From: Trichosphaerium sp. ATCC 40318
Lineage: Eukaryota > Protista > Tubulinea
Assembly: GCA_038496445.1 (NCBI GenBank)
Contig: JALMLS010000480.1
Location: 124,001 to 188,000 of the forward strand
Direction: 5' to 3'
DNA: 64,000 nucleotides
The notes beneath the pieces are model-generated. The model was not told the DNA's origin. It worked only from the letters and a program-made list of their open reading frames with translations, and did no database searches. The position numbers and the translations under genes are program-made. Shown piece by piece: positions 646 to 58,088 of the stretch; positions within the stretch are counted from its first letter, which is position 1; each line of letters starts with the position of its first letter.

Positions 646-3600
646 ATGGGGACATATTCTGTTATTTTCATTGCTCTACTTGTGTCTATAGTATCATCAA
701 GGCCTCTCGCATTTTTGCCAGGTATTGAGGATGGAAGTTTTGATCCCCCATTCTCAGGAGAGATAGCCATAGACGGTACGTTAAACTGAAGCAATTTTAG
801 TAAAAACAGCAAAGTGAGAACATTCTTTTGGTAACGTTCTTGCTTGATGGTGTTTACATTATGACACCAGACATGCTTTTGCGTAGATACACTACTCTTA
901 GGGTTTATATGTGGTAATGTAAGGTTTTGATTGTTTTATTTAGTGTTTTACATAAAAACCGACTCTGGCTCTACAACTGCTACGATAGCTGGCGACGAAT
1001 TTACTTGGCAAGGTATGCGAGATTTTTTTTCAGATAGTGATGTGTATTTACGTACTACCTTTTGGGTGTGACGTTATATATTTTGATTTCGGATAGTCAC
1101 GTGATAACAACCGTCACTTCGCCCAGTTGTAGTTTTATACCCATTTGTAGTAAAATTTTGTTCCTTTTTTTTTTTGTCCTAATTGAGTTTGTCCGCAAAT
1201 TGGGTTTGTTTTTGTGGGTACTAAATTATTAATTAGCATCACAGACGTTGGGTGGCGAAGAAAGAATGGGTGTACGCTAGATTTTTTATTATGTTGACAA
1301 GAAACACTGGTTATTTTTTTTGTTTTTGGTTAAAGGTCAAATTGTACTTGTTTTGTTATGAAACTGTGGTTTTCGAACCCGTGATGATAGTGTTACTGAT
1401 AAAAACATAGCTAGTTACATTTTTTGATGGGCTGGGCGATCGTAAGGCACGTCATATCCAGTAATTAAACCGTTTTGTTTTAACTTACGTCTTTTTATTA
1501 GCTCACTTACGAAGGTGTTGCTTGTACGCTATTTTTGTCTTTGTAGCTTAAAATATATCTCTAAAGATTTAAACTATAGCGCGCTGTGTTCCTTCCCCAA
1601 GTTTTGGACAATTGGACCCAGCCACTTTTGGTTGGAACTATGTTTGGTATATCAAGATTCTTTTTTTTTTTATCTCATTTTTACTAAGGGGAAAAGATGC
1701 TGGGACTGGTTCCTTCATATCGGCAAAAATGATCGTTCTAAATAGAGAAAATGGGTTCTTTGCTACTTTTGTTTATCTATCTCCCAACACTGGCCTTGGC
1801 TCCGATAATACATGGCATGAAGAAGATATAGATAGCACTACCAATGTACAAACAATTTTTTTAGCTTTTTTTTTCGAAGTCTCTTCTTTTTGTTCCAACC
1901 ACCACGTGTTTTTTTTTTTCGTTCTAAATAATATCAAAAGTAGTTTATATCGTTATTCAAAGCATTTTTTGTCAGTTACGGTTTTTGGTGCAACCAGAAA
2001 TGAGGTATTTAGAAAAAAGTTTTCGGCGTACTTTTTTTTTTGCGTGTTTTTTTTCCTCTTTTGCCTCACTCCTTATGTAGCAATGGACGATAGCGAACGT
2101 TTTTTGGTTTGGCGCCCTGGGTGATATAACAGATGATGCGACTTCTAGTATAAACTTTATCAATGACAATGGTGATATTGGCACCTTAAACACCGGAATG
2201 ATGGAGTTGTTTGCCACCTTTGCAACCCCACCTGCCCTACCCTCATTTACTGGCTGGGGTGACACAAATGGGCGCCCTAGATCACTTGATGTGAGTTTTA
2301 ATGCATTTTGTACTCTGAGAGCGAGATCATTCATACGCCTTGTTCGAATTGTCTTGATTTTTTTTTTTTCAGCTGTTATTTTTCTACTGGTACCCTTTTT
2401 ATTACTGTAATAATTTTGATTTGTAGCAATGGTTTAATCCCACCACCGATATTTCTCCTGATTATTTGAGTGGATCACCAACGGTTAATCCCTTTTATTA
2501 TGCTCTTACAAATGATGACTCAAGTTTTCCTGAGGTATGTCAGTAGACAACTGCATGATGGGATCGGACACGTGTCACTTTTTTTTTCTTGTTTTTATTT
2601 ATACTAAACTATTTTCTGTTCTTTACAGGTTTTTTTAATTCAATTTGGTATTGGTACAAGGTACGCAGAAGCTCATTTTTGTCAAACTAAAATTTTTTTT
2701 TTTTTTTTTCCTTCTTTCGAAGAACTGTATTGACTTCGTTTTATAGTGCCGGTGTAAAAAGGGCCTGGTTAGATGAAACTACATTAACATTAGGGGGTAG
2801 AGTGGTGTATGTTATATTATCATTCTTGTGATGCACGTTGAAGTACAAATGAGCTAATTTGTTTTTTTTTGTTTAGTCAACAGTCAGATTTTGACACAAT
2901 GGGACCATCTCCTTCTTCTACGGCTGAAGAGATTGATAGGTGTAGAGGAACATGTACAATCCCACGTATGGCTAAACGTGAATACAACAATATCAAGGGA
3001 TTTAGAAATCAAAAGTGTATCCTTCTTTTCTTTCTTTTTTTTAAATGTCTTATCTTGCAATGCGTACCTTGTAGTTTTTACCTTGACACATCAAAGTATC
3101 GATGGAAGGCAAACATAATGATATTTTGAACCTTGTGAGCGATGACCATTGTCAAGTTAACGCAAAGCTGGGTAAGACTGACGATTCTAAGTCAACACGT
3201 GTGACTCTACTTGGATTCAGTGTTGGTAAGTACATCTTTGTAACTCTCCTTTCTTTTTTGTTTCTTTTTGTTTGATACGTGATTATTGTTCTTACTTGGT
3301 TTCATAAAGGTGATGAGAAGATATTGGTTGGATGTGATGATAAACATGCGTCTGTTGTTCAACTCAACGGCAAACCGTTGGCATCAAAACAAAAGTTTTC
3401 ATCTTCTTCAGGATTCATTTCTCTCAATGAAGATGGTACAGTGACTGTTGCATTCCCATTGTACCAGTTCAAATTATCTATCGTTCAAGTTGGTACACCT
3501 TCATGTCATGTTGGGTTTAATATCAAACATTGGCATGGCGATCATGACTCTCCTCCACACGGTACGCATATTTGTCTATGAAGACTTAAAATGTCAACAA

Positions 3601-10779: not shown

Positions 10780-11793
10780 ATGAACAAAAACAGCGCATTC
10801 TTTGATGAGATACCTGTTGAAGTCATTGTTCATATTCTACAGTTTGTTTCTATTGTATCTATGCATTCTGTTGTACATACCTCTAAATTACTTTCAAATA
10901 TTGCAAAACAGCACATGGGATACGCTAACAGGAGAAAAATAGTAATAGAGGAGGGAAACATGCTCAAAAAGTTATTTAAGACATCGCCTCGTCTCATCAA
11001 AGAAAACACGATTACTATCAAGTTCCGTATTAAACAAAAGCATTTGAAGTACCTACAAGGAGCGTATGCCCTTGAAATACGTACAGAATTTGGTACAATT
11101 AACTTTACTGACTTTAAAGTTGCTGATGGGATAGACTTTCAATATTGTGATTCTGTTTCTAATAAACACCTTAAACAGCTCTCTGGGATTAGAAGAATAA
11201 ATCTAAGCAGTGATGGTAGAATGATAAGCTCGGGCTGTACTTCTTACCCTCGTAATTGGCGTTCAGGTGTTACAGATAAAGGAGTTAAAGCATTGGCTGG
11301 TGTTCATACAATAAACCTTTCTGATTTATTCAGTACAAGAATTACAGATAAAAGTATTAAAGCATTGGCTGGAGTTCATACTATTGGTTTACGTGGTACA
11401 AGAGTTACAGATGAAGGTGTTAAAGCATTGGCTGGAGTACACACTATTGATTTAAGTATTACAAGTGTTACAGATGAAGGTGTTAAACCATTGGCTGGAG
11501 TTCATACAATAAACTTGAGGTGTTGTTTCAAAGTTACAGATAAGGGTGTTAAAGCATTAGCTGGAGTTCATACTATTGACTTACATAGTACAAGAGTTAC
11601 AGATGAAGGTGTTAAAGCATTGGCAGGTGTTCATTGCATTGATTTACGCAGCACAAATGTTACCGATGATGGTATAAAAGCACTAGTGGGCGTGCACACA
11701 ATTATTCTTACTTACACAAACGTTACTGACGTGGGCGTAAGATTGCTGGGTAATGCTGTATCTAGTGGTGATCACATGTTAATAAGATTTTAA
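10780..11793 (+). CDS. Intronless F-box / leucine-rich-repeat protein, copy A (7 tandem LRRs of ~21 aa)
   Basis: F-box FDEIPVEVIVHILQFV...TSKLL; repeats VTDEGVKALAGVHTIDLxxTx; uninterrupted 337-aa ORF. Confidence 0.9.
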   Translation: MNKNSAFFDEIPVEVIVHILQFVSIVSMHSVVHTSKLLSNIAKQHMGYANRRKIVIEEGNMLKKLFKTSPRLIKENTITIKFRIKQKHLKYLQGAYALEIRTEFGTINFTDFKVADGIDFQYCDSVSNKHLKQLSGIRRINLSSDGRMISSGCTSYPRNWRSGVTDKGVKALAGVHTINLSDLFSTRITDKSIKALAGVHTIGLRGTRVTDEGVKALAGVHTIDLSITSVTDEGVKPLAGVHTINLRCCFKVTDKGVKALAGVHTIDLHSTRVTDEGVKALAGVHCIDLRSTNVTDDGIKALVGVHTIILTYTNVTDVGVRLLGNAVSSGDHMLIRF

Positions 11794-31887: not shown

Positions 31888-34800
31888 TTAGAATTCGTTA
31901 TCAACAGTTGTAGCTGTTTTTTGTGTTGCTGTCAAGTCAACACCTGATTGAGGTTCTAAATAGTTTTTAAGTTAGTAACCAAAGAAAATTAGAAAAAAAA
32001 AAGTAGCAGTTGCTTACCTGTTGCACTTGCTGAGTGTTGGGTGTTGAAAGTAGGCATTTTAGCACCTCCATAGAACCATTGACATTTTACAATGAACAAC
32101 GCATTGATAGCAAGAGCTATAAAAGAAGAGTAAGGTCAAAAAATAAACAAAGTATTTCAGATGAAGAAAAAAGAAATCAAAACAAATGTGAAGTTGATTG
32201 GCCAACTCTTCGTTCTCACTTTCTCTTTGAAGATGAAGTGTTGGCAGTGGGAAGTCTGTGTTTTTACTGACAGTTATATATAAGGTACCTGCGCCTAGCA
32301 TAAGGAATATTGTGAAGAGAGCAAACTTTGTGAATCTGTTCATTTCAGGTGCGTATATTGCAACGCAAATGATTGCGAAGAATATCACGTTGTATATTGC
32401 GAAGAATATTATTTTGGATTCGTTATATCTCTGTAGTGGTATATTACGAACTCTAAAAGCAATAACAGCACCAATGAGAAGGAGTACACCCTTGGAAGAA
32501 GGTAAGCAAGATCCAAGAAAAATAGTAAAAAAATAAGAAAAAAAAACCATTGGCGTACGTTTACTGCTATAATGGCGTATACCAATGCGTTAAATAGTGA
32601 GTTATAATGACACTCATAGTGATTATAAGATATTCTATACGGATCAATAACAACAACTTGCTTGCCAGGGTCACCCCAAACGGTCTTTGAAAAAAGTTAA
32701 TAGACCTATTCACACAAATGTCTTTTGTACCATTATGATTAACACTACGACGTGAAGAGCTAATAATCCACCAACCCATGAAAGTACTTCTAAGTTAGAT
32801 ATTTTAATCTTATCAACATCTCTCTTCCACATTCTCTCTATACGTAATGTCTAGAACATCATAAGCTCCCGCAAATGTAAAAATTTTTTGATGAAAGAAA
32901 AAAAACAGAAAAAGATGATTTGCTCGCTTCTGCCATTTGCAGTACACTCATACATGAATTGGTTGTAAGGTGAGGGAAAAGGTGTAACAATAATCATGAA
33001 GGTGAAAAGATTTGATGGCGATGAAAGACTGTACCTTTGCGAAAAAAGGAGCGAAAAGAAGAATGAAACCAATATCTACCAACCAAGGACGAAGAGTACA
33101 TGTAACATCATTGACGACGTTTGGAAAGAAAGTGAACACACTGGCGTATATAACAATACTTCCAAATAGTATAAGGTACATGAAGGCAGGGGAAGCCGCC
33201 TGAACGAAGTAAGTCAAAAACAAAGATGTGAACTTAGGAAAGAAAACTGAAAAAAAAAAGGACGTACAATGAACACTTTCTTAAGGTTCTCACTTAGACC
33301 AAAAGTAGTGGCAACGAACATATATACTCCCCAGAATATACTAGAAATAATGAATATTACAGCCAATATCGCTACAAAGTATTCCGTCCAGTGACCTTGA
33401 AGGGTAAGAGAAAAAACTTTAAAGTTTTTTGTTTCAACAAAAACGAAATGAGACGTACCGAACTCTGGGTTGAGTACACGCTCTGACCAAGTTGGCATAG
33501 GATAGACTACAGCTTGTTCTTGTACTGCAAGTGGTGCTATTGTTACTCGTTCTCCGTTCACGAACTGCATAAGAACCTTCTCACGCTGCTGTTCTCCTTG
33601 TGCTCCCCATGAGATACGTCCAACTATAGTGTCATGTTTAGACCTGAATCCGGCACGGTAGACCTCATCTTGTAGAGACAAGAATCCGTTATCTTCAACA
33701 GTCTATACAAAGCGCGTGTAAGTCAGTGTAGAGTTAAAAAAAAAGCTGCAACGAAGTTTTTTTTGTTCAAGTTTGTGAAACGATGTTAAAAGGAAGTTAC
33801 TGCTTACAATGCCGTTGTTACAACTTCCATTCGTTCCTTCAAGCATCAACCTTCCATTTACATCAATCTAAATAAAGGTAAATCACTTTTTATTTATGTG
33901 TCGTTTAAAATCACGTGTGCGTACGTCAAGGTTAAACGATTGTGAAACATCCTCTACAGCTCTTTTAAGAACAAGAGCACCGATTATAGGGTTGAGTTGT
34001 GTTGACGTTAGAGGTTCCCCAAAGCGCGCCTCGAATTCTTTAGATACTTCTGAAAGCAGACCTAACTCTTCTGTCCTTGGGTAGTCCATTTCATGCTCAA
34101 ACTAGAACAAACGCGTTAAAGGCAGAAAAAAAAGATCAAAAAGTCGGACAAACAATTTTCTTTTTCTGCGGCAAAAAAATTTATCTTCTAGCGCTAGTTG
34201 GAAAACTTGCGAAAGTTCGGATCAATCTGCCGATAACAAGGAAGCGAGTGTTTCCTTAAAATAAAAAAAAATTTGGTCGTTAGGTTTTTGTGAACTGAAT
34301 TCAGTCTTTAAAATGAAGTACTCCACAAATAACTGCAGTAGACACAAGAAGGAAATTCGGCATAGCAAATTCTGTTGAGTTTTTTTTAGGGAGAAAATGG
34401 AGATTGACAGAAAAAAAAATCCAATAAAAAAACATTGACGTACTGCTGAAACACCCATCCTATAGTTAAGCATATCATCGTCTAAGTCGAAACCATAGCT
34501 TGTAGCTGGACCAACACGACCGATGTAAGCTCTAGGTGTATAGTCTATTGACCTGTACAAGTCCAAGAACCAGTTTGCATCATTTGTTGAAGTATCGCAG
34601 TACATCCAAACATCAGGGTCTTTTATGCTCATGTCAATTGCTGCTTTTCTCATTTCGATTCGAGCAGTCTCGTTGCTATTAATCCAACCACTTTGATCTA
34701 AAGTGACAGGTAAGGACAAGGAATGGTTAAACCACAAGTGGTTACCTGGCATAGAAATGTATCCTTTAAATTCAAAGCCGTGGCGCTGCATGAAATCAAG

Positions 34801-40229: not shown

Positions 40230-41046
40230 TTATTCGTCATCTGAGTATAAAGGCTCATACTCAGACTCTCTCCACTTTCTACAACAAGGACCTAAATTCC
40301 CTTGATTTGGAAAAAAAAGCACGTGTCAGAAAAACAATCATCAAGAAAAAAAAAGTCTTTGACATACTTGGTGTTGTTTCGTTATTGCTCTCTTCGTTGC
40401 ATCCAAAATCATCATCTTCATCATTTGATGAACTTAATACATCATCTTCTTTATTCTTATTAAACATGGACATCAAAACCTTTTTGCTACTTCTTGTTGA
40501 TGTCTTTAAAGATAATTTTTTTTTTGTTGAAGCTAACTTAAAATCACCAACCAACTTATCATCTTTATACAACCAGTGATACTTTATTTTCCCTTCCTTT
40601 GTTCTCTCAGTATACTCACCATTCATTTTATCATCTACACAATGGTACAGACATTTTAACTCACCAGTAGGGTAGTACGTCAACACTCTTCCAACAGCTT
40701 TTCCGTTAACAAAATTCTGTTTTTTTGAGATTGTTTTATCCCTTCTGAAGCAATACCATACGCCATCCTTCTCTAGGAACGTATTAAATCGTGATGCAGC
40801 GCTCAAATGACATAATTGAGGCCATAAAAGGTACAACTACGCCAAAGTTAATAAAAGACGTTATTTTATCGTTTTTATGCTTGAACCTCTTTGTCCGTGG
40901 TGTAAATTTTATGTTGAAGCTCTATTGGTAGGTACAAAAGGCTAAACGCTTTATTTCAATTAAACAATGCTTTTGGTGTTATTGTACCTCTTGATAACGT
41001 CTATTGGTAGTGAATTTGTGCGTTTTGGTTCTTCTGTGCCACTCAT
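40230..41046 (-). CDS. F-box-like + MORN-variant (YwqK-like) repeat protein
   Basis: LLYLPIELQHKIY (F-box-like); NFVNGKAVGRVLTYYPTGELKCLYHCVDDKMNGEYTERTKEGKIKYHWLYKDDKLVG (MORN_2-type repeats); acidic tail; 4 exons. Confidence 0.7.
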
Positions 41047-42218: not shown

Positions 42219-42739
42219 AATGACATAGATGTAATGCCAATAACACGTGGCTAAAAGCAAATAAAAAGTTGTAGTAAAATGTTGTACCTCAGTTGTTGTA
42301 TTGTTTAAGTACTCGATTATAGGCTTTGTAACTTCTGACAATGCAAGATAGAATAATAGGCAAAGCCATTTAGATTGTTTTAACACCAGGTGGTTGCATT
42401 ATAAACACGTGAACACCCTTCCGTAGAGATAGTATTCTTTGAACCGAACGAAAAAATATTACTTATGAAATACGACAAAGCCGAATACACCGTTTACTTA
42501 TCTCAGTATGTAGCAAAGCGGTCATCATGAGCATCACCTCAAGCACAGCGCGCATCATTGAGTTTGACAGGCAATATACAACGAACAAATTTTTTTCGAG
42601 AAATCCGTGGACCGCCCTTGCGCAAAGTCAACTTAACGCCTTTTCGTTGAAATTAGCAATTATTTTCTGGGTCCACTCAATTGGCAGCCTAAGCGATCAG
42701 AGTCGCGTGATTTTTAGTATCTGGTGTTTTACAAAAGAG

Positions 42740-44149
42740 ATGAACGAAAACAGCGCATTCTTTGATGAGATACCTGTAGAAATCATTGTTCACGTTCTAC
42801 AGTTCGTTTCAATGTTATCTATGCATTCAGTCGTGGGAACATCTAAATTACTTGAGAACATCGCTAAACAGTACCTTGGTTATGTAAATAGGAGAAATAT
42901 TGTTCTAGAGACGGAAGCAAAGCTGCAAAAACTTTTTAAAGAAGCACCTCATCTCATCAAAGAACATACGTTTTTTATCAAGTTTTCTATTCAACAAAAG
43001 CATCTACAGTACCTACAAGGTGTGTATGCACTTGTCTTTCATAAAGGGTTTGGTAAAATAGACTTTACTGGCTTGAATATCGTTGACGGAATATACTTTC
43101 GATACTATAAGTCAATCAAGGACAGACATCTTAAACAGCTTGCTGGAATTAACAGAATTTATTTAGCTCGTTCCAGTGTTAAAGATGAAGGCATTAGAGC
43201 ATTGGCTGGTGTTCATTCAATTGACATATCGTACTGTCAAGTAACAGATGAAGGTGTTAAAGCATTGGCTGGAGTTCATACAATAAACTTGGGGTGTTGT
43301 TACAAAGTTACAGATAAGGGTGTTACAGCGTTAGCTGGAGTTCATACTATTGACTTACATCGTTGTATTGTTACAGATGAAGGTGTTAAAGCGTTAGCTG
43401 GAGTTCATACAATTGACATATCGTACTGTCAAGTAACAGATGAAGGTGTTAAAGCATTAGCTGGAGTTCATAAAATAAACTTGGGGTGTTGTCATAGAAT
43501 TACAGATAAGGGTGTTAAAGCATTAACTGGAGTTCATACAATTGAATTACATTGTTGTAATGTTACAGATGAAGGTGTTAAAGCATTAGCTGGAGTTCAT
43601 ACAATTTACTTAAATTATTGTAACGTTGCAGATGAAAGTGTTAAAGCTTTAGCTGGAGTTCATACTATTGATCTATCTAATACTGCAGTTACTGATGAAG
43701 GTGTTAAAGCTTTAGGTGGAGTTCATACTATATCCCTTAGCTCAACTGCAGTTTCTGATGAAGGTATTAAAGCACTGTCAGGAGTACATTCAATTGGTCT
43801 TTTCAACACTAAAGTCACAGACAATGGTGTTAAAGCATTGGCTGGTGTTCACTTGATTAATTTATATAACTGTAATGTGACGGATGAAGGTGTTAAAGCT
43901 TTAGCTGGAGTTCATACCATTAGTCTATCTAATACTGCAGTAACAGATGAAGGTTTAAAAGCATTGAAAGGAGTTCATATTATTAATGTTACCAACTGTC
44001 CTGGTGTTACAGATAAGTGTGTTAAATCACTAGTCGATGATGGGACAATAGATATCTCGAATACACCTCAAAGAAATATTACAGCTGAATTAATGCAATC
44101 GTTTAATATTAATCCAGACTTCAGCTTGCTATTTGTTAATACGTTGTAA
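42740..44149 (+). CDS. Intronless F-box / LRR protein, copy B (13 tandem LRRs)
   Basis: MNENSAFFDEIPVEIIVHVLQFV aligns with the starts of copies A and C, so ATG 42740 is preferred over 42527; 13 repeats of 21-22 aa. Confidence 0.9.
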   Translation: MNENSAFFDEIPVEIIVHVLQFVSMLSMHSVVGTSKLLENIAKQYLGYVNRRNIVLETEAKLQKLFKEAPHLIKEHTFFIKFSIQQKHLQYLQGVYALVFHKGFGKIDFTGLNIVDGIYFRYYKSIKDRHLKQLAGINRIYLARSSVKDEGIRALAGVHSIDISYCQVTDEGVKALAGVHTINLGCCYKVTDKGVTALAGVHTIDLHRCIVTDEGVKALAGVHTIDISYCQVTDEGVKALAGVHKINLGCCHRITDKGVKALTGVHTIELHCCNVTDEGVKALAGVHTIYLNYCNVADESVKALAGVHTIDLSNTAVTDEGVKALGGVHTISLSSTAVSDEGIKALSGVHSIGLFNTKVTDNGVKALAGVHLINLYNCNVTDEGVKALAGVHTISLSNTAVTDEGLKALKGVHIINVTNCPGVTDKCVKSLVDDGTIDISNTPQRNITAELMQSFNINPDFSLLFVNTL

Positions 44150-44992
44150 ACTATATGTGTTAATTTCACTGCCTAGAATAAACAAAGAACCTTTAGTTGC
44201 ACTATGAGTTTAACACTGGCACTTGTTTTCTTTATATTTAGTGGTTGTATATCTATGACCTCTATCCAAGGTTAAAACTGAGTACACTCTCACTTAATTT
44301 TGAGTAAACGATTGGGTCATAGTAGCGCTGACCTTTTTGTATCCTTAGAGGATGTCTTTTTAGCTGTTTCAAAGCAGGGTAATGAAGTACTTGTATTCAA
44401 CATTATGTCACATTCTGTCAAGCACATTTACCACAGAAAAGAAATAGGACTGCCAGGCGATTTGTCACCACCATTGTTCAATTTAACAATCACGTAGACT
44501 TTGTACTTGGCGTGAGTATGTAGTACATGTTAAGCAAAAATGTTTTTGTTACATGCATAGCACCTATTATTCGAGCTATGAAGGATGAAAAAGATGTACT
44601 AAGGTTATGAGTAATGAACTATTAAATGAACTATTAAAGACTTCAATTGTGTAGTGTCAAGGTTAATTATAGTATGGTCCACCAAACTCTTGGAATGAGA
44701 CATCTTCGGTAACATTGACTACAAGCATTTAAACAAACGTATTGGGTTCTGGAATATTAGCAAAGTTTTTTCGAATAAATATGGAGAAGCCAAATTTGGT
44801 CAGTGAGTAAAGCGGATAAGTTAAAATCTGGAAATGTTCAGAAAGTATGATGACACCATCAATAAATATATTTACCACATAATCTTCCGAGTCAAGATTA
44901 GCAAATAAAGTCAAACTTTTCTCGAAAACCGCGAACCTAAACATCTCACGTGTTAACTTGTCAAAAACAGATCTAAACTTGCAGCAAAAACA

Positions 44993-47669
44993 ATGGTAGA
45001 AGACTACCAGTACATTAACAAAAATGTAGCTAAACTGAAGGTATGTTTAACGTTTAAATCATTTTTTGTGGGTTATAACACCATAGCGGTAGCGTTGGAA
45101 GGTAAAAGATGGATTACAAACTACTTCTACCGTTGTTAATAAAAAAGTCGTCAAATTCGTTAACCTACTATCCGTGGATCACTGTGAGTGCGTTTGAATA
45201 ATATTTAACGCGTTTTTTAACGTTTTCGTCAGAGCACTTATTAAAGAGGCAGAAAATATGTCTAAAACACTCTCTGATGCGTCTATACAACTGGTAACTT
45301 CTTTTCAATGATATGGTTTCGCCTAACGTAACGTTTCAGAACGTTGTCGGTGTTGATCTCAGAAAATTCGGATTTATGAGTTTCGCAGCTCAACTGGCAA
45401 AGATAGCGGGCAATCACTTACCTAAAAACGTCTTTTCAAAGCGTAGTTTACATAAATCATTTTATCCAGTACACGTGTACATCATAAGTACGTACAAAGT
45501 TGTCAAAACAAAATTTTTTTTTTTGGAAGTTGATGACAATCTTTTGAAGAAATTTACACATGTCAACTCTGTTGAGAGGTTAGAATAACGGAATTGGTTT
45601 GTAAAAAAATTTGAATTTAATTGATAAGAGTAGTACATGATGAGCAATAATTACTTGTTCGTCAGTGTCTGACATTCTAACAACAAAAAAACAACTTTAC
45701 ATTTTGTTTATTAAGTGATTGTTTTAGAGTATGATAGTGTCTCTGGTACATCTTCTCATCCTGCACATCATGATGACGCTGATTTAACTATTAATATTTG
45801 TCTCGGAGGCAAATTCAAAGGTAGAGAAATCCATTTCCTCGTTCTACTCAAACTGAGTGTTAGGTGGAGAGCTTTATGTTATGGATAAGGAAACAACTGT
45901 TATACCTCAAGAACAAGGTACAGCAATCATTCATGGCAATGTTCTGCATGGTAGTAAACCTACAGAAGGTTGTAGGTAAGTTCACAAGCATAGAAAAGAC
46001 ACGGTTTAGTAAAGAGTCAATAGGTATAATTTAATAGCCTGGTTTAAACGCAACTCGTATTTCAAAAAATTCACGTGTCTGCCTGCAGAGATATCTAAAC
46101 ATGTGGTATCCTTTTTAGATATACCTACTTTATTCAGATTCTCTTGTGTATCAAAGACATGTCATGACATTATGGAACAATGGGGAGAGGTAAAAAGAAA
46201 CTCTATTGTTCTAAAGTTGAAGTCTTGACATCAATTTTTCTTTAGAGTATTATTAAACAAAGGATATCTTCCAACCAACCTGAAGTATTAAATCAAGCTC
46301 ATTACAAAAAGTTAAGTACATGGAGGGAAAAAGCACGCTTCTACAGAGTAGTAAACAAAGCGTATGTCTACATCTCAAAACTCTGTAAAAACAACCGTTT
46401 TTACAACTCTTTTAAAACACGTGGAAACTCCTGCCAAAACAAAAGAACAAATTAATACCATGTTCAACAGTTAATATTTACACTCAAAACGTTAATTACT
46501 GTATTAGGAGTAAAGAAGCTTCAAGCATAGTTTGGGAAAGGATGCACATTATTTTAAAAGAAGTATGTGATTCTGAAAAATTATATTGCAGCAAGATGGA
46601 ACTTGCTCAGGTACTAACATCCACTTGATCTTATCAACAAGTCTTGTATCTATAAATCGTTCATTCATTTTGTTTGACGTAAAATATTAACACGTGGTTT
46701 AAAGAAAATAGCCAACGGTACAAAGAATTTGATATCGAACAAGCACCATGCCGTTTTATTTGGTGGTGTTGATGGGATTGCTCACTGTTCACTCTCAATA
46801 TTGGAAGTATTACAATCGCATGACCTTTTTTCAGAAGATATATCCACTCTATACAGTCTCCTATTAGAGCTGTATAAAAACGCACGTGTCAGAAATCAAA
46901 TCATATTTTTTTTCTTTCTCCTTTTTTTCTAGTTTTTTTTCTTAGTTCGTTTATTGACACTGTTCATTACATATTCTTTAATTAATATGCTTAGTGTCGT
47001 AACACATTTCAGTCGTATAAACAATACATTGTTAACCATGACGAAAGAAAAGTAAAACTCATGACAAAACTAATGAACAAAGGTAAATTCAGCCGCTGTG
47101 TGAATCACTTTACACAAGGAGAGCAGCTTGAAGTAACAATGATTTATCCTGTAAGACGTATTCCAAGATATACTCTTCTTGCATCTGTACGATAACGCTA
47201 TCTAGTACTTGTCAGATGAACTAACTGTAAGTACAGGAAGTTAAAAAGTATACCGGAACATGTGTTACAGAATTATTAGATCTTGTACGTTCATTGAATT
47301 TCTGATAATACTTGTACATCTAGTAACGTCTTTCTTAATGGTTAGCTTATAACCTCACTCCACGGTCAAAATGAAGTAATTTCGAGAGCAGTGAGGGAGC
47401 CCAAAAACAAAGATTTTAACTTTTTATTTGCACTGAATGTCAATTTGGAAGAAGGTGGATGTCTGATGAGCTTTTGCACGAATAGAATGGTTATGTCGTC
47501 AAAACATTATGGTAAAGTAATCAAGATATCACCGGTTACAGGGGGTCTATGTTTTAAGTTAGATAAAGAAAACGATATCAAGTTGATCAAGCTTACTGAA
47601 AAAGAAAAAAGGCGAATTATTTTTTGGTTTGAACACGGTAGTTCAGAAAACGATTGCACATTGTTGTAG
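44993..47669 (+). CDS. Multi-exon 2OG-Fe(II) dioxygenase (OGFOD2/P4H-like) - F-box - RhoGEF DH (probable PH) protein
   Basis: HPAHHDDADLTINICLGGKFKGGEL...VLHGSKPTEGCRYNLIAWF; F-box FTCLPAEISKHVVSFLDIPTLFRFSCVSKTC; DH hallmarks RMHIILKEVCDSEKLY, LFGGVDGI, YKQYIVNH, IYPVRRIPRYTLL. 3' end uncertain (47669-47890). Confidence 0.8.
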
Positions 47670-47749
47670 ATATCAACGACTTATCAACAAGTTTTGGCAA
47701 CACCAATAAATATTTGAGTGTAATTCTTTATGTACTGACCATAGTTTCC

Positions 47750-48699
47750 TTAATACTTACTGGTGGCACCAGAACCACAAACTGTTTAAAAGAGAAAAAA
47801 ACGAGAAAAAAAAAGTATATGTTTGTATTGCGTTGTAAGTTGTTTCAAGAATTCACTAAATTCACGTTTACAACAGCTAATTTCGTGTAGTTTATTCAAA
47901 TCTAATTCACTTTACAAGCATGTTTAGAAGCTGCTTCCATAAAATAAGTAAAATTTTGACAGTTCCCAATGCATCCATCATCTTGTATGAAGTAAAAGGA
48001 AAAGTCTAAGCAAGCAAACATTAAATTTATGCAACTCGTAAATATATGCATACCTTCAGCTTTTGGATCACAATTAATTGTGACTACATGAACGTTACAA
48101 TACGAAAAAAGAAGGAAAAAATTTCTGAAAACATTTCCGTACGCTTAGCTTGTCTTGTTTCAAGGTCACCTCCTCCGTATAGAAACATAACACCTTTGCC
48201 GTCATTCAAACCAAATATTTCTTCATCAGAGTATTTTCCAATGCAGGACTACATCGAGGAGATAAGTTGTAAGTTAACAAAAAAAACAACTCACATTTCT
48301 GTCTGGAGTAACAAGACACGCGCCGTATTCATGCTTACAGCTGTAGTTCTAAACAAGAAATATATGATTAGAAGCGTTTTACGGTCAAGAAGTAGTACAT
48401 GGCACGGTTTCTTAACGTTGGTACAAACAGAGATATTGTAAAGAGATAAATACCCCTAAAATAATAAGAAATCGCTTAATTTTAACTCCACTTGTCTCTT
48501 TGCGCACGGGACATGAAGGACAGAATGGATAACTACCAAGGTGACTCGCAGTAACTCCAATAAGCTTCGTTAAATCATACTCTGTACCGTCACTTGCTAT
48601 TATAGACTCACAAGCGTGCTTCTTTTTTTGTGGAATAGATACCGCTAAAGCCGAACATAACCAACACAGTAGTATCAACGAGATGAAAGAATAGTGCAT
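47750..48699 (-). CDS. Secreted mannose-6-phosphate-receptor-homology (MRH/ATG27-like) domain protein
   Basis: Signal peptide; DGTEYDLTKL, YNISVCTNVKKPC, CIGKY, GVMFLYGGGD, VTINCDP, KHAC; no TM segment seen. Confidence 0.65.
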
Positions 48700-48841: not shown

Positions 48842-50488
48842 ATGGCCAAAATAGGTTAGTATTAGTTGTAAACCCATATTTATCACTTAAAACAACGAAC
48901 TAGCGCATTTAGATCGCAACTTTGAGCTGTTTTAAACGAACTTTTAATTAACCGCTTTAATTTACTCCCATACGCGTTTATTTCATAACAAAAGCTTATA
49001 CGCGCCCTTTTAATACTGTTTTAAAATTATTCAACAAAGGTAAGCGCGAAGCTAACTACGACTCAAGATTCGGCGATTGTACTAGATTGTGGCTCTCTTG
49101 AATCGCGTGTTGGGTTTTCTGGAGATTCTGAGCCGAAAAGCGTCTTTCCATCTGTTGTTGGTACGCCAATAAACCAAGTAGTAATGGTGGGTATGCCACA
49201 ACGTATGGCCTTTGTTGGAGATGAGGTATTTAGTAAATGTGGCATACTTCAACACAACTATCCTATAAAGAATGGAGTCATATCAGATTGGAATAAAATG
49301 GAGTTTTTGCTTGATTATGTCTTCAAATATAAACTACAAGCAGACTCATCAGATAACCCTATTTTAATGACAGAACCTGCGTTAAATCCAGTGCAAATAA
49401 GGTACGTAAATCATGTTCTTTGAGAGCAGAAAATAATGAGAAAGTTTTTTTTTTTCATTGAAACTAAAAAAAGCAACAAAATCGGCAATCATCTTTCGTT
49501 CCTTAGTTCTTGCTTGAAGGCTTCCACCTCTTTTATGTATTTTTGATTTGTTTTCTCTTATGGATATTCAGTTCTTGCTGATACCTTTTTTTTGAGGGAG
49601 CGAACAACAACGTTAATGTTTGAGACATATAATGTTCCTTCATTTGGTTTAATGAATAAGGAGGTGCTTGCTTTATATGCCACAGGGGAAACAAATGGTT
49701 TAGTCATAGATATAGGTGACACGCTTACCCAAACAGTACCTGTTTACAAAGGACGCTCACTACAGAAATCGGTAGAACAAGGATTTTTCGGTGGAGCTGA
49801 TGTAACTGAATCTTTAAGGACTCAACTCCAAGATGCAGGAAGAGGATACTCGTTCACAACTACAGCTGAGCGTTCCCTTATCAGGCATATCAAAGATACT
49901 CTATGTTATGTGGCTCTTGATTACGATAAAGAATTACGTAGGGATGACAAAGAAATTGAAAGCGTTTATAAACATCCAGGTGGTTATGATATTATCACTA
50001 ATCACGAAAGATTCAAGGCTTGTGAAGTTCTTTTCAATCCAAATAAGACATCCGATTCACAACAGTTACTTGGTGTTCACACCATGGCTTGTGAATCCAT
50101 TCAGAGATGTGATGTTACTATCCAACCTGTATGTGAAACGTCATTTAGTTTGTTTGTTTTTTTCTTTTCCAAAAAAACCTCCTTGCTGATAAGCTTCGAC
50201 CCATAGCATCTGATTTGTTTTCTGATCTGTTTTTTTTAGACTATTTGTAGTAATATACTTGTAACAGGAGGTTCGAGTGTTACAACAGGATTTTCAGAGC
50301 GCCTACAGATTGAACTTTGCAAAGTCTTACCAAAAACAAAGGATTACAAGGTTGTTTCTACCAATAAGAAGTATCTTTCTTGGGTTGGTGGTTCTATGTA
50401 TGCAAGTAATAATGATACCAAGACTGTGTTTATATCCAAAGAAGAATACGATGAATACGGGCCTGGTATTGTTAATAAAAAACGTTGA
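48842..50488 (+). CDS. Divergent actin-related protein
   Basis: IVLDCGSLESRVGFSGDSEPKSVFPSVVG, YPIKNGVISDW, ILMTEPALNP, MFETYNVP, LYATGETNGLVIDIGD, ERFKACEVLFNP, SWVGGS, EEYDEYGPGIV. Start exon tentative. Confidence 0.88.
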
Positions 50489-57014: not shown

Positions 57015-58088
57015 ATGAACAAAAACAGCGCATTCTTTGATGAGATACCTGTTGAGGTCATTGTTTATATTCTACAGTTTGTTCCGATCAGATCTATGCA
57101 CGTTATAGTACATACCTCTAAATTACTTTCAAATATTGCAAAACAGCACATGGGATACGTTAACAGGAGAAAAATCGTGATACACAACAAAAAGAAGCTT
57201 AAAATGATGTTTCTGACATTGCCTCATCTCATCAAAGAAAACGTGATTGTTGTAAAGTTTCGTATTAAACAAAAGCATTTACAGTACCTACAAGGAGTTT
57301 ATGCCCTTGAATTACATGAAGAGTTACATAAGATTGACTTTACAGGCTTTAAAGTTGTTTATGGGATAGACTTTCAATATTGTGATTCTGTTTCTGATAA
57401 ACACCTTAAACAGCTCTCTGGTATTAGAAGAATAAATCTTAAAAAAAAAAAGCCTTATGAAGTAAAGGATCACGTTTATTACGTTGCTGCACGCCGTCTA
57501 AAAGTAACAGATAAAGGCATCAAAGCTTTAGCTGGAGTCAATCACATTGATTTAAGCCATACTTCAGTAACAGATGAAGGCATTAAAGCATTGGCTGGTG
57601 TACAATACATTGATTTAAGCCATACTTCAGTTAGAGGTGAAGGCATCAAAGCTTTGGCTGGTGTTTATTATATTGATTTGAGCCATACTTTAGCTACAGA
57701 TGATGGTATTAAAGCATTGGCTGGTGTTCATCACATTGATCTAAGCCATACATATGTCACTGATGAGGGCGTTAAATCATTGGCTGGTGTTTATCATATT
57801 AATTTAAAGTCCACTTCAGTTACAGATGAGGGTATTAAAGCTTTGGCTGGCGTTCGTCACATTGATTTAAGCAATACTTCAGTTACAGATGATTGTATAA
57901 AAGCGCTAGTGGGTGTTCACACAATTGATGTTACTCGTACAAAGGTTACAGATGAAGGTGTTAAAGTCTTGGGTATGGCTAATGTAATTAGGCATAGGTC
58001 ACCGCTAAGATATTATTGCGTTATTTGGAGTCTAGCTTACAGCATTGGCACTTCTAAAAGTGTAAGTGTCAGATACGAAATGGCTTAA
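57015..58088 (+). CDS. Intronless F-box / LRR protein, copy C (7 tandem LRRs)
   Basis: MNKNSAFFDEIPVEVIVYILQFV; VTDEGIKALAGVxxIDLSHTS repeats. Confidence 0.9.
   Translation: MNKNSAFFDEIPVEVIVYILQFVPIRSMHVIVHTSKLLSNIAKQHMGYVNRRKIVIHNKKKLKMMFLTLPHLIKENVIVVKFRIKQKHLQYLQGVYALELHEELHKIDFTGFKVVYGIDFQYCDSVSDKHLKQLSGIRRINLKKKKPYEVKDHVYYVAARRLKVTDKGIKALAGVNHIDLSHTSVTDEGIKALAGVQYIDLSHTSVRGEGIKALAGVYYIDLSHTLATDDGIKALAGVHHIDLSHTYVTDEGVKSLAGVYHINLKSTSVTDEGIKALAGVRHIDLSNTSVTDDCIKALVGVHTIDVTRTKVTDEGVKVLGMANVIRHRSPLRYYCVIWSLAYSIGTSKSVSVRYEMA

Follow-up and report, generated by a model that had tools for sequence, protein, structure and literature searches.

An OGFOD2-like oxygenase, an F-box and a RhoGEF domain joined in a predicted gene of Trichosphaerium sp. 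ATCC 40318

In a stretch of 64,000 nucleotides from the tubulinean protist Trichosphaerium sp. ATCC 40318 (GenBank assembly GCA_038496445.1, contig JALMLS010000480.1, positions 124,001 to 188,000 of the forward strand), the plus strand between positions 44993 and 47669 contains what appears to be a single gene that joins, in this order, an oxygenase domain dependent on iron and 2-oxoglutarate (2OG), an F-box and the Dbl homology (DH) domain of a Rho guanine nucleotide exchange factor (RhoGEF). The whole stretch is referred to here as the window, and all positions are counted from its first letter. The fusion had been proposed in a preliminary description made from the letters of the window. 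The gene model given below was built from a three-frame reading of positions 44900-47800 and checked against the raw sequence, with phases and split codons examined junction by junction. It comprises the following features.

44993..45040, plus strand: exon 1, with the start codon, MVEDYQYINKNVAKLK; similar to 'YkplHpel', with which the OGFOD2-like N-terminal domain begins
45093..45187, plus strand: exon 2, phase 2 at its end, ...VKFVNLLSVDHC; part of the putative OGFOD2-like N-terminal domain, manual GT-AG model
45233..45293, plus strand: exon 3, (E)ALIKEAENMSKTLSDASIQL
45340..45442, plus strand: exon 4, NVVGVDLRKFGFMSFAAQLAKIAGNHLPKNVFSK
45530..45570, plus strand: exon 5, (L)DDNLLKKFTHVNS; weak donor GTTGAG, the least certain boundary
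45730..45820, plus strand: exon 6, YDSVSGTSSHPAHHDDADLTINICLGGKFK(G); HxD iron ligands H45766 and D45772
45864..45975, plus strand: exon 7, (G)GELYVMDKETTVIPQEQGTAIIHGNVLHGSKPTEGC(R); distal His ligand at 45947
46024..46189, plus strand: exon 8, (R)YNLIAWF, that is, the 2OG-binding Arg and the last oxygenase strand, then the F-box (~46073-46171)
46246..46361, plus strand: exon 9, linker from the F-box to the DH domain (SIIKQRISSNQPEVLNQAHYKKLSTWREKARFYRVVNK); open and bounded by GT-AG
46508..46610, plus strand: exon 10, in which the DH domain begins (conserved region CR1: ERMHIILKEVCDSEKLYCSKMELAQ)
46705..46887, plus strand: exon 11, central part of the DH domain; open frame bounded by GT-AG introns, entered and left in phase 0
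47013..47186, plus strand: exon 12, core of the DH domain with CR3, PVRRIPRYTLL
47237..47284, plus strand: exon 13, EVKKYTGTCVTELLDL, the DH helix following CR3; DH consensus 'kel.k.T' matched by eye only
47346..47669, plus strand: exon 14, closing helix of the DH domain (…GQNEVISRAVRE), then a tail of 85 residues and a TAG stop codon (47667-69)
47705..47710, plus strand: possible polyadenylation signal AATAAA, 36 nucleotides past the stop, read directly

Manual splicing of these 14 exons yields 1665 nucleotides, a number divisible by 3, which correspond to 554 amino acids plus the stop codon. The phases chain without conflict at any junction, there are no internal stops, and GT-AG bounds all of the introns, which are 43-159 nucleotides long (n=13). 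In the window as a whole, where the GC content is 32-40%, genes are split by many introns of 43-160 nucleotides, and the prokaryote-style list of open reading frames misses nearly all of the gene, just as had been pointed out at the outset. An upstream stop lies in frame with the ATG of exon 1, which ends at a GTATGT donor. The 87-nucleotide intron at 45443-45529, in frame and with a run of T ahead of its acceptor, was placed from a count made by eye; with this intron removed, the fusion gene is gap-free up to NICLG, over 64 residues, when compared with a paralogue in the same window (described below), and what had been read as one long exon was therefore split. Exon 9 is required for the reading frame, since exon 8 exits in phase 0 and exon 10 is entered in phase 2.

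All the residues of the oxygenase domain that are expected to hold iron and 2OG were found exactly where the preliminary description had placed them. The HxD motif reads A-H-H-D-D, in AHHDDADLTINICLG, with the H codon at 45766-68 and the D codon at 45772-74; the distal His is encoded at 45947-49, within NVLHGSKP; and the 2OG-binding Arg, which opens RYNLIAW, is specified by a codon split as AG|G (45974-75 and 46024) across intron 7, 9 residues past H45947. Scanned singly against Pfam at E-values up to 10, the oxygenase exons, of 13-37 residues each, gave no match, and single-exon phmmer searches of the PDB returned only chance matches, such as antibody light chains and TNF ligands, that were discarded; relatives of the domain were therefore needed. 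A custom hidden Markov model (HMM) derived from 120 natural OGFOD2 proteins was compared with all 3813 six-frame stop-to-stop segments of the window. The HxD exon (45730-45820) ranked first, with 25.2 bits and an E-value of 1.9e-6 over the 3813 segments, and was followed by an exon of the paralogue (13.8 bits), the RYNLIAW exon (8.7 bits) and two more paralogue exons, with the distal-His exon lower in the ranking. The top five matches, and six of the nine best, belong to the fusion gene or to its paralogue, and in each of the two genes they are colinear with the profile. Exon 7 aligns colinearly at profile positions 269-297, with the distal H of the profile on H45947, and exon 8 aligns at positions 300-319, where 'eRvNLIiW' meets the Arg, such that the H, D (H-y-D), H and R of the profile fall exactly on the residues named by the earlier reader. 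In the alignment that served as a query for the family search described below (A3), the metal-ligand columns H, D and H are invariant. The ranking and the alignment of the ligands together lend profile support to the identification of the oxygenase. For the N-terminal OGFOD2-like domain (PF25238), exons 1-3 show weak colinear matches of 1.3-1.9 bits along with motif resemblance: exon 1 matches positions 82-104 of the HMM with 1.3 bits, and the profile motif 'FC-ell-e-en' straddles the junction of exons 2 and 3 in what is partly a reading by eye, the sole scored match at this junction being one of 1.9 bits on the unspliced segment. The oxygenase is, by these profile matches, OGFOD2-like, and its set of iron and 2OG ligands is complete.

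The F-box follows directly. The Pfam F-box profile (PF00646) scores 35.5 bits, versus a cut-off of 20.5, on the translation of window:46025-46189, where it covers residues 17-49 (~46073-46171), and the motif LPxEI...FLD...L.R...VSK...W is present. The C-terminus of the oxygenase and the F-box share exon 8, with ~12 residues between the last strand and the F-box; the shared exon and the score above the Pfam cut-off bear out the earlier statement that an F-box comes right after the oxygenase. A linker of ~45 residues leads from here to the DH domain. Exon 12 (47013-47186) alone matches the Pfam RhoGEF profile (PF00621) with 28.6 bits (cut-off 27.6) at profile positions 88-147, and it aligns with residues 125-184 of the DH domain encoded by a metagenome contig described below, L001, with a z of 4.0; the N-terminal part of the DH domain of L001 has its top match in the window in exon 10 (E ~1, z 3.2), and exon 11 on its own has no Pfam match. 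By eye, the domain contains CR1 (EVCDSEKLY) with the conserved Glu, CR3 (PVRRIPRY.LL) and a last helix (GQNEV) with Asn; the two motifs from which a DH domain had originally been proposed thus lie in exons 46508-46610 (EVCDSEKLY) and 47013-47186 (PVRRIPRYTLL) of the model. With the CR1 Glu, CR3 and the last-helix Asn, as read by eye, the DH domain looks competent and should bind a Rho-family GTPase. Past the DH domain, no Pfam family, a PH domain included, was matched on 47346-47666; a word search with the last exon (107 amino acids), which saw only proteins of 59-187 amino acids, detected no relatives; and a single-sequence AlphaFold model of this exon alone, with a mean confidence (pLDDT) of 36, was unusable. 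The 85-residue C-terminal tail may be a small PH-like domain.

The same arrangement is encountered in a second organism. A search of 1.84 billion cluster representatives with the junction exon (window:46022-46189, 56 amino acids) as the query gave three matches, among which P0001 (101 amino acids, 41% identity) is a true relative, with an alignment that begins at the Arg, takes in the F-box and covers residues 1-51 of the query; P0002 and P0003 match the F-box part only, look like generic plant-type multi-F-box proteins and were rejected. P0001 sits on L001, a JGI metagenome contig of 2167 base pairs with 31.7% GC. After an acceptor-like TAG, an uninterrupted frame at 21-429 of this contig runs through ...DTHHPIHSDDSDFTINICLGANFKGGNLYF...IHASKATIEGERFNLIIWYRAQ... 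into an F-box, with HSD...H...R and the F-box contiguous and no intron between them; the 5' end is cut off, and the N-terminal half of the oxygenase is located outside the contig. This frame scores 88 bits (E 3e-26) against the OGFOD2 HMM and, in Pfam, 27.5 bits for the F-box and 18.7 bits for PF13640 (below the cut-off of 27). A 64-nucleotide intron (GTAAGT donor at 430, AG at 492-493, 23% GC) joins the F-box frame in phase to a complete RhoGEF domain (Pfam, 55.4 bits) with its end at 1167, and the gene ends directly after the DH domain. When the L001 piece was compared by phmmer with the 3813 window segments, exons 8 (E 2.9e-11) and 6 (E 1.9e-9) of the fusion gene came first, the next four matches being the three exons of the paralogue and exon 7 of the fusion gene (E 0.12), and the alignment of this homologue to exon 8 spans the oxygenase/F-box junction. 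With the L001 piece as its query, a word search retrieved nothing beyond the piece itself. As read from this contig, an oxygenase, an F-box and a DH domain follow one another in the same order in a distant eukaryote with AT-rich DNA. The central proposal of the preliminary description, namely, three domains in one gene with intact ligands, has thereby gained both a phase-consistent gene model and a second organism with the same domain order. Downstream on L001, a uS5/S2 ribosomal protein gene with a long RGG-rich N-terminus (1217-2113, minus strand) is convergent, with ~50 nucleotides between the stops.

The family to which the oxygenase belongs was delineated with a profile word search that employed alignment A3 and retrieved 303 proteins. 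The best 120 of the 303, which come from animals, plants and protists, nearly all carry the annotation OGFOD2 or CP2. None of these 120 has a RhoGEF domain or, going by the precomputed Pfam lists, an F-box; the longest relatives and an ankyrin fusion, when rescanned, had no F-box. A metagenome scan with the L001 piece added three stand-alone OGFOD2-like relatives, L002, L003 and L004. Two of these, L002 and L004, score 85 and 109 bits against the Pfam family PF25238, 'OGFOD2-like', and L003 scores 26.5 bits against the same family (below the cut-off of 31) and 23.2 bits against PF03171 (at the cut-off of 23). Among proteins of the PDB, LH3, a lysyl hydroxylase, is matched in its catalytic domain by the L004 protein (E 2e-7), and prolyl 3-hydroxylase 1 is the best match of the L001 piece (E 0.049). 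The JmjC family is absent from all Pfam scans of the exons and of the homologues. The preliminary description had set the gene in the context of the Skp1 prolyl hydroxylase (PhyA/PHD), a setting that is not sustained, given that the nearest relatives are OGFOD2 proteins and the nearest structures are LH3 and prolyl 3-hydroxylase; because the oxygenase is OGFOD2-like rather than of the PhyA/PHD type, the comparison with Skp1 hydroxylation is an analogy only.

Several other proteins encountered in these searches merit mention. P0117 (317 amino acids, on a JGI contig) carries ankyrin repeats N-terminal to an OGFOD2-like domain, so that elsewhere the OGFOD2-like family has been joined to other protein-binding modules. 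In P0067 (454 amino acids, UniRef name Arcella intermedia), residues 36-131 give a sub-threshold match to UQ_con (18.1 bits, E 0.002), and this N-terminal extension is a further, weak hint that OGFOD2 and the ubiquitin system are linked. The L003 gene, at 9581-10354 of contig MDTB01196983.1 (200 kb), encodes an OGFOD2-like/2OG-FeII_Oxy protein with GERFNLIIW, and its neighbours, an Fpg/Nei-like glycosylase gene and a dipeptidase-like gene, are bacterial-looking; judging from this setting, the OGFOD2-like family appears to have bacterial members. A single-protein metagenome scan also returned L005, a spurious match on a bacterial contig with 58% GC, which was discarded.

The paralogue of the fusion gene lies on the opposite strand of the window.

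~6723-5716 (exons ~6723-6550, 6398-6209, 6151-5976, 5916-~5716), minus strand: paralogue, OGFOD2-like fold plus F-box

The paralogue has an OGFOD2-like N-terminus (MKNIYKPLSPDLL...) and opens, as KNIYKPLSPDLL, with the same motif as exon 1 of the fusion gene; its first exon matches positions 77-149 of the OGFOD2 HMM with an E-value of 0.68. The further exons read ...SSDYTVNICLG, then GGELVF...GGRYNFCFW, and then an F-box exon (Pfam F-box-like, 30.7 bits), and the two genes have in common a phase-1 intron that interrupts the Gly codon ahead of GEL. In the paralogue the metal ligands have given way to other residues (D for the first H, E for D, and P for the distal H), the Arg is retained, and no DH domain was found downstream, so that the product looks like a pseudo-enzyme F-box protein. 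As the paralogue keeps the oxygenase-to-F-box junction, this junction is an inherited unit in this genome; furthermore, with a paralogue devoid of metal ligands as the background, the intact ligands of the fusion gene are informative. A comparison of an enzyme with a pseudo-enzyme is thus built into one window. Weak HMM matches at ~59.6 kb (plus strand) and ~16.6 kb (minus strand) were considered as further paralogues and rejected on inspection.

With respect to the rest of the window, scans for tRNAs and Rfam families were empty, and three single-exon open reading frames in the neighbourhood, looked up by exact sequence, had no entry on record. Single-exon genes with LRR_6 repeats, of the form VTDEGVKALAGVHTI, are located at 42527-44149, 10780-11793 and 57015-58088, all on the plus strand. 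Some of the LRR_6 genes have, by eye, an F-box-like N-terminus, and a small F-box-like open reading frame is present at 17592-17200 on the minus strand; the window is rich in F-box genes. A divergent actin-like exon at 49592-50206 (plus strand) scores 138 bits against Pfam Actin and ~148 bits against PDB actins over 177 residues, and by these matches it is assigned to an actin-related protein rather than to a conventional actin. On the minus strand, a fragment of a class-C G-protein-coupled receptor (7tm_3; 32059-32550) and a fragment with MORN repeats (40279-40836) are probably exons of larger genes.

Taken together, these observations lead us to infer, with a probability of roughly 0.7, that the locus is one gene of 14 exons for a protein of ~554 amino acids that consists of an OGFOD2-type oxygenase (an OGFOD2-like N-terminal domain and a double-stranded beta-helix that bears the ligands), an F-box, a RhoGEF domain and an unclassified C-terminal tail, and that acts along the following lines. 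The F-box would dock the protein on Skp1, either as a subunit of a Skp1-cullin-F-box (SCF) complex or as a plain Skp1 partner, and the DH domain would bind and activate a Rho-family GTPase or, alternatively, present the GTPase to the SCF. Since the characterised members of its clade are hydroxylases of protein Lys or Pro, the oxygenase probably acts on a protein bound in the complex, which it would hydroxylate by means of O2, Fe and 2OG; the candidate substrates would be Skp1 or a cullin, the GTPase, and the protein itself. The supply of oxygen or of a metabolite could then influence the output of the GEF or its stability. Dictyostelium JcdI/Fbxo13 is a precedent: there, a dioxygenase with an F-box binds Skp1 and is limited by O2 at physiological levels (PMC9485057). 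A stronger form of this mechanism, to which we give only a small chance, is a self-contained switch gated by O2 and 2OG, in which the hydroxylase would modify Skp1, a cullin or the Rho GTPase bound to its own DH domain. Were this the case, O2 or the metabolic state would directly set SCF assembly or the lifetime of the GEF and, through it, Rho/Rac-driven motility, and, by the logic of domain fusion, stand-alone OGFOD2 proteins, the human one included, would act on SCF/ubiquitin or Rho-pathway proteins.

Several points weigh against the single-gene interpretation and the mechanism attached to it. The single-gene model is a reading of splice sites and phases; the linker exon (46246-46361) is without homology support; the individual oxygenase exons have no Pfam match, and their profile scores are exon-by-exon; and the DH domain of the fusion gene has little similarity to that of L001 (E ~1-4), so that a DH domain could have been acquired separately in each. 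Retention of intron 8 leads to a stop 12 codons on, that is, to an oxygenase-F-box protein without a GEF, and the paralogue is an example of how a form with these two domains can occur. Skp1 binding, the substrate, the GEF activity and the dependence on O2 are all deductions from sequence.

The stop in intron 8 is also what one would expect if the locus comprised two transcription units or gave rise to isoforms, one product being an oxygenase-F-box protein that ends just past exon 8 and the other a separate or alternatively expressed DH protein, with the three-domain protein an artefact of manual splicing. The paralogue, in which an oxygenase-like fold and an F-box occur with no detectable DH domain, conforms to such a division, as do the predictions of the gene caller for L001, where the F-box and the RhoGEF domain were given as open reading frames 5 nucleotides apart, the second with an ATG start. 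However, the introns between exons 8, 9 and 10, of 56 and 146 nucleotides, are too tight for a terminator plus a promoter, and the first Met available to a separate DH protein falls inside helix CR1. The exon phases chain exactly, and the C-terminus of the oxygenase is in one exon with the F-box. In L001 the GTAAGT donor is perfect and all frame-preserving GT-AG pairs join the F-box to the DH frame, and the identical domain order in two distant organisms likewise runs counter to an artefact. We consider two separate units to be quite improbable. It is unlikely too, if somewhat less so, that the oxygenase-like domain is non-enzymatic and has a role in binding or regulation, such as substrate recognition or 2OG sensing, within an F-box RhoGEF. 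The ligand loss in the paralogue, which has kept the fold and the F-box, indicates that the family tolerates non-catalytic use, and activity data are lacking for every OGFOD2 protein (PMC10083964); yet both the Trichosphaerium gene and the distant L001 gene retain H-x-D, the distal H and the R, as expected under selection for catalysis. The presence of several F-box/LRR_6 genes and of a degenerate paralogue in the window might further be taken to imply that the locus is a decaying or non-functional copy amid duplicated F-box genes, the more so because neither the last-exon word search nor the junction-exon search of 1.84 billion representatives brought up an identical or close protein. With 14 open exons, intact splice sites, intact catalytic and domain motifs and a plausible AATAAA past the stop, this explanation appears to be the least probable one.

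Under the preferred reading, namely, a single gene for an oxygenase-F-box-RhoGEF protein, the principal interest concerns OGFOD2 itself, a conserved eukaryotic oxygenase that is present in humans too, has no assigned substrate, and whose functions have been stated to be unknown (PMC10083964). The recurrence of the fusion in two distant organisms leads to a testable guess at the partners of OGFOD2, that is, Skp1/SCF components or Rho-family GTPases. In addition, the protein would be a second example of an F-box dioxygenase, structurally unrelated to the JmjC F-box proteins, and as such would be relevant to oxygen sensing in protists.

The predicted protein can be compared with known systems each of which shares some part of its design. 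Canonical OGFOD2 proteins are similar to its oxygenase in the motifs H-x-D-[DN]-x-[ED]-x-T-[IL]-N-[IV]-[CS]-L-G, GG.LY, H-G and G/E-R-[FYV]-N-L-I-x-W, as aligned by the HMM, and, by resemblance, in the 'YkplHpel' start, but they are stand-alone proteins of ~270-390 amino acids, whereas here the domain is fused to an F-box and a RhoGEF domain. Combination of JmjC and an F-box is found in KDM2A and KDM2B (FBXL11 and FBXL10). These proteins and Dictyostelium JcdI resemble the protein described here in that a non-haem Fe/2OG dioxygenase and an F-box are part of one polypeptide; they differ in that their dioxygenase is a JmjC domain and they have no RhoGEF domain, whereas the present oxygenase is OGFOD2/lysyl-hydroxylase-like. 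The F-box of JcdI/Fbxo13, an O2-dependent JmjC protein, mediates binding to Skp1, and the Km of the protein for O2 is close to ambient levels (PMC9485057); the idea of a dioxygenase that has an F-box of its own is not without precedent. In JcdI the F-box is N-terminal to the JmjC domain, whereas here the oxygenase is N-terminal to the F-box.

An F-box followed by a Dbl-homology domain is known in ECT2L and in Acanthamoeba Dbl RhoGEFs (PMC5499878), which have these two domains in the same order as the Trichosphaerium protein and for which no oxygenase domain has been reported. The PhyA/P4H1 protein of Dictyostelium and Toxoplasma is a Skp1 prolyl 4-hydroxylase that links O2 to the SCF (PMC9485057; PMC7864055); it resembles the predicted protein in being a 2OG oxygenase tied to the SCF and differs in being of the PHD type and acting in trans on Skp1, in contrast to an F-box-fused domain of the OGFOD2/LH3/P3H-like clade. 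No report of the three-part oxygenase-F-box-RhoGEF layout was found in the literature, and no fusion of an OGFOD2-type domain with an F-box or a RhoGEF domain was found either there or in protein databases, as covered by the 56-amino-acid junction query and by length-restricted word searches of libraries that evidently exclude the proteome of the window. Among all these systems, JcdI is the closest functional precedent. What is known already is the union of a dioxygenase with an F-box and that of an F-box with a DH domain; what appears to be new is the three-part layout and the involvement of an OGFOD2-type domain in either pairing.

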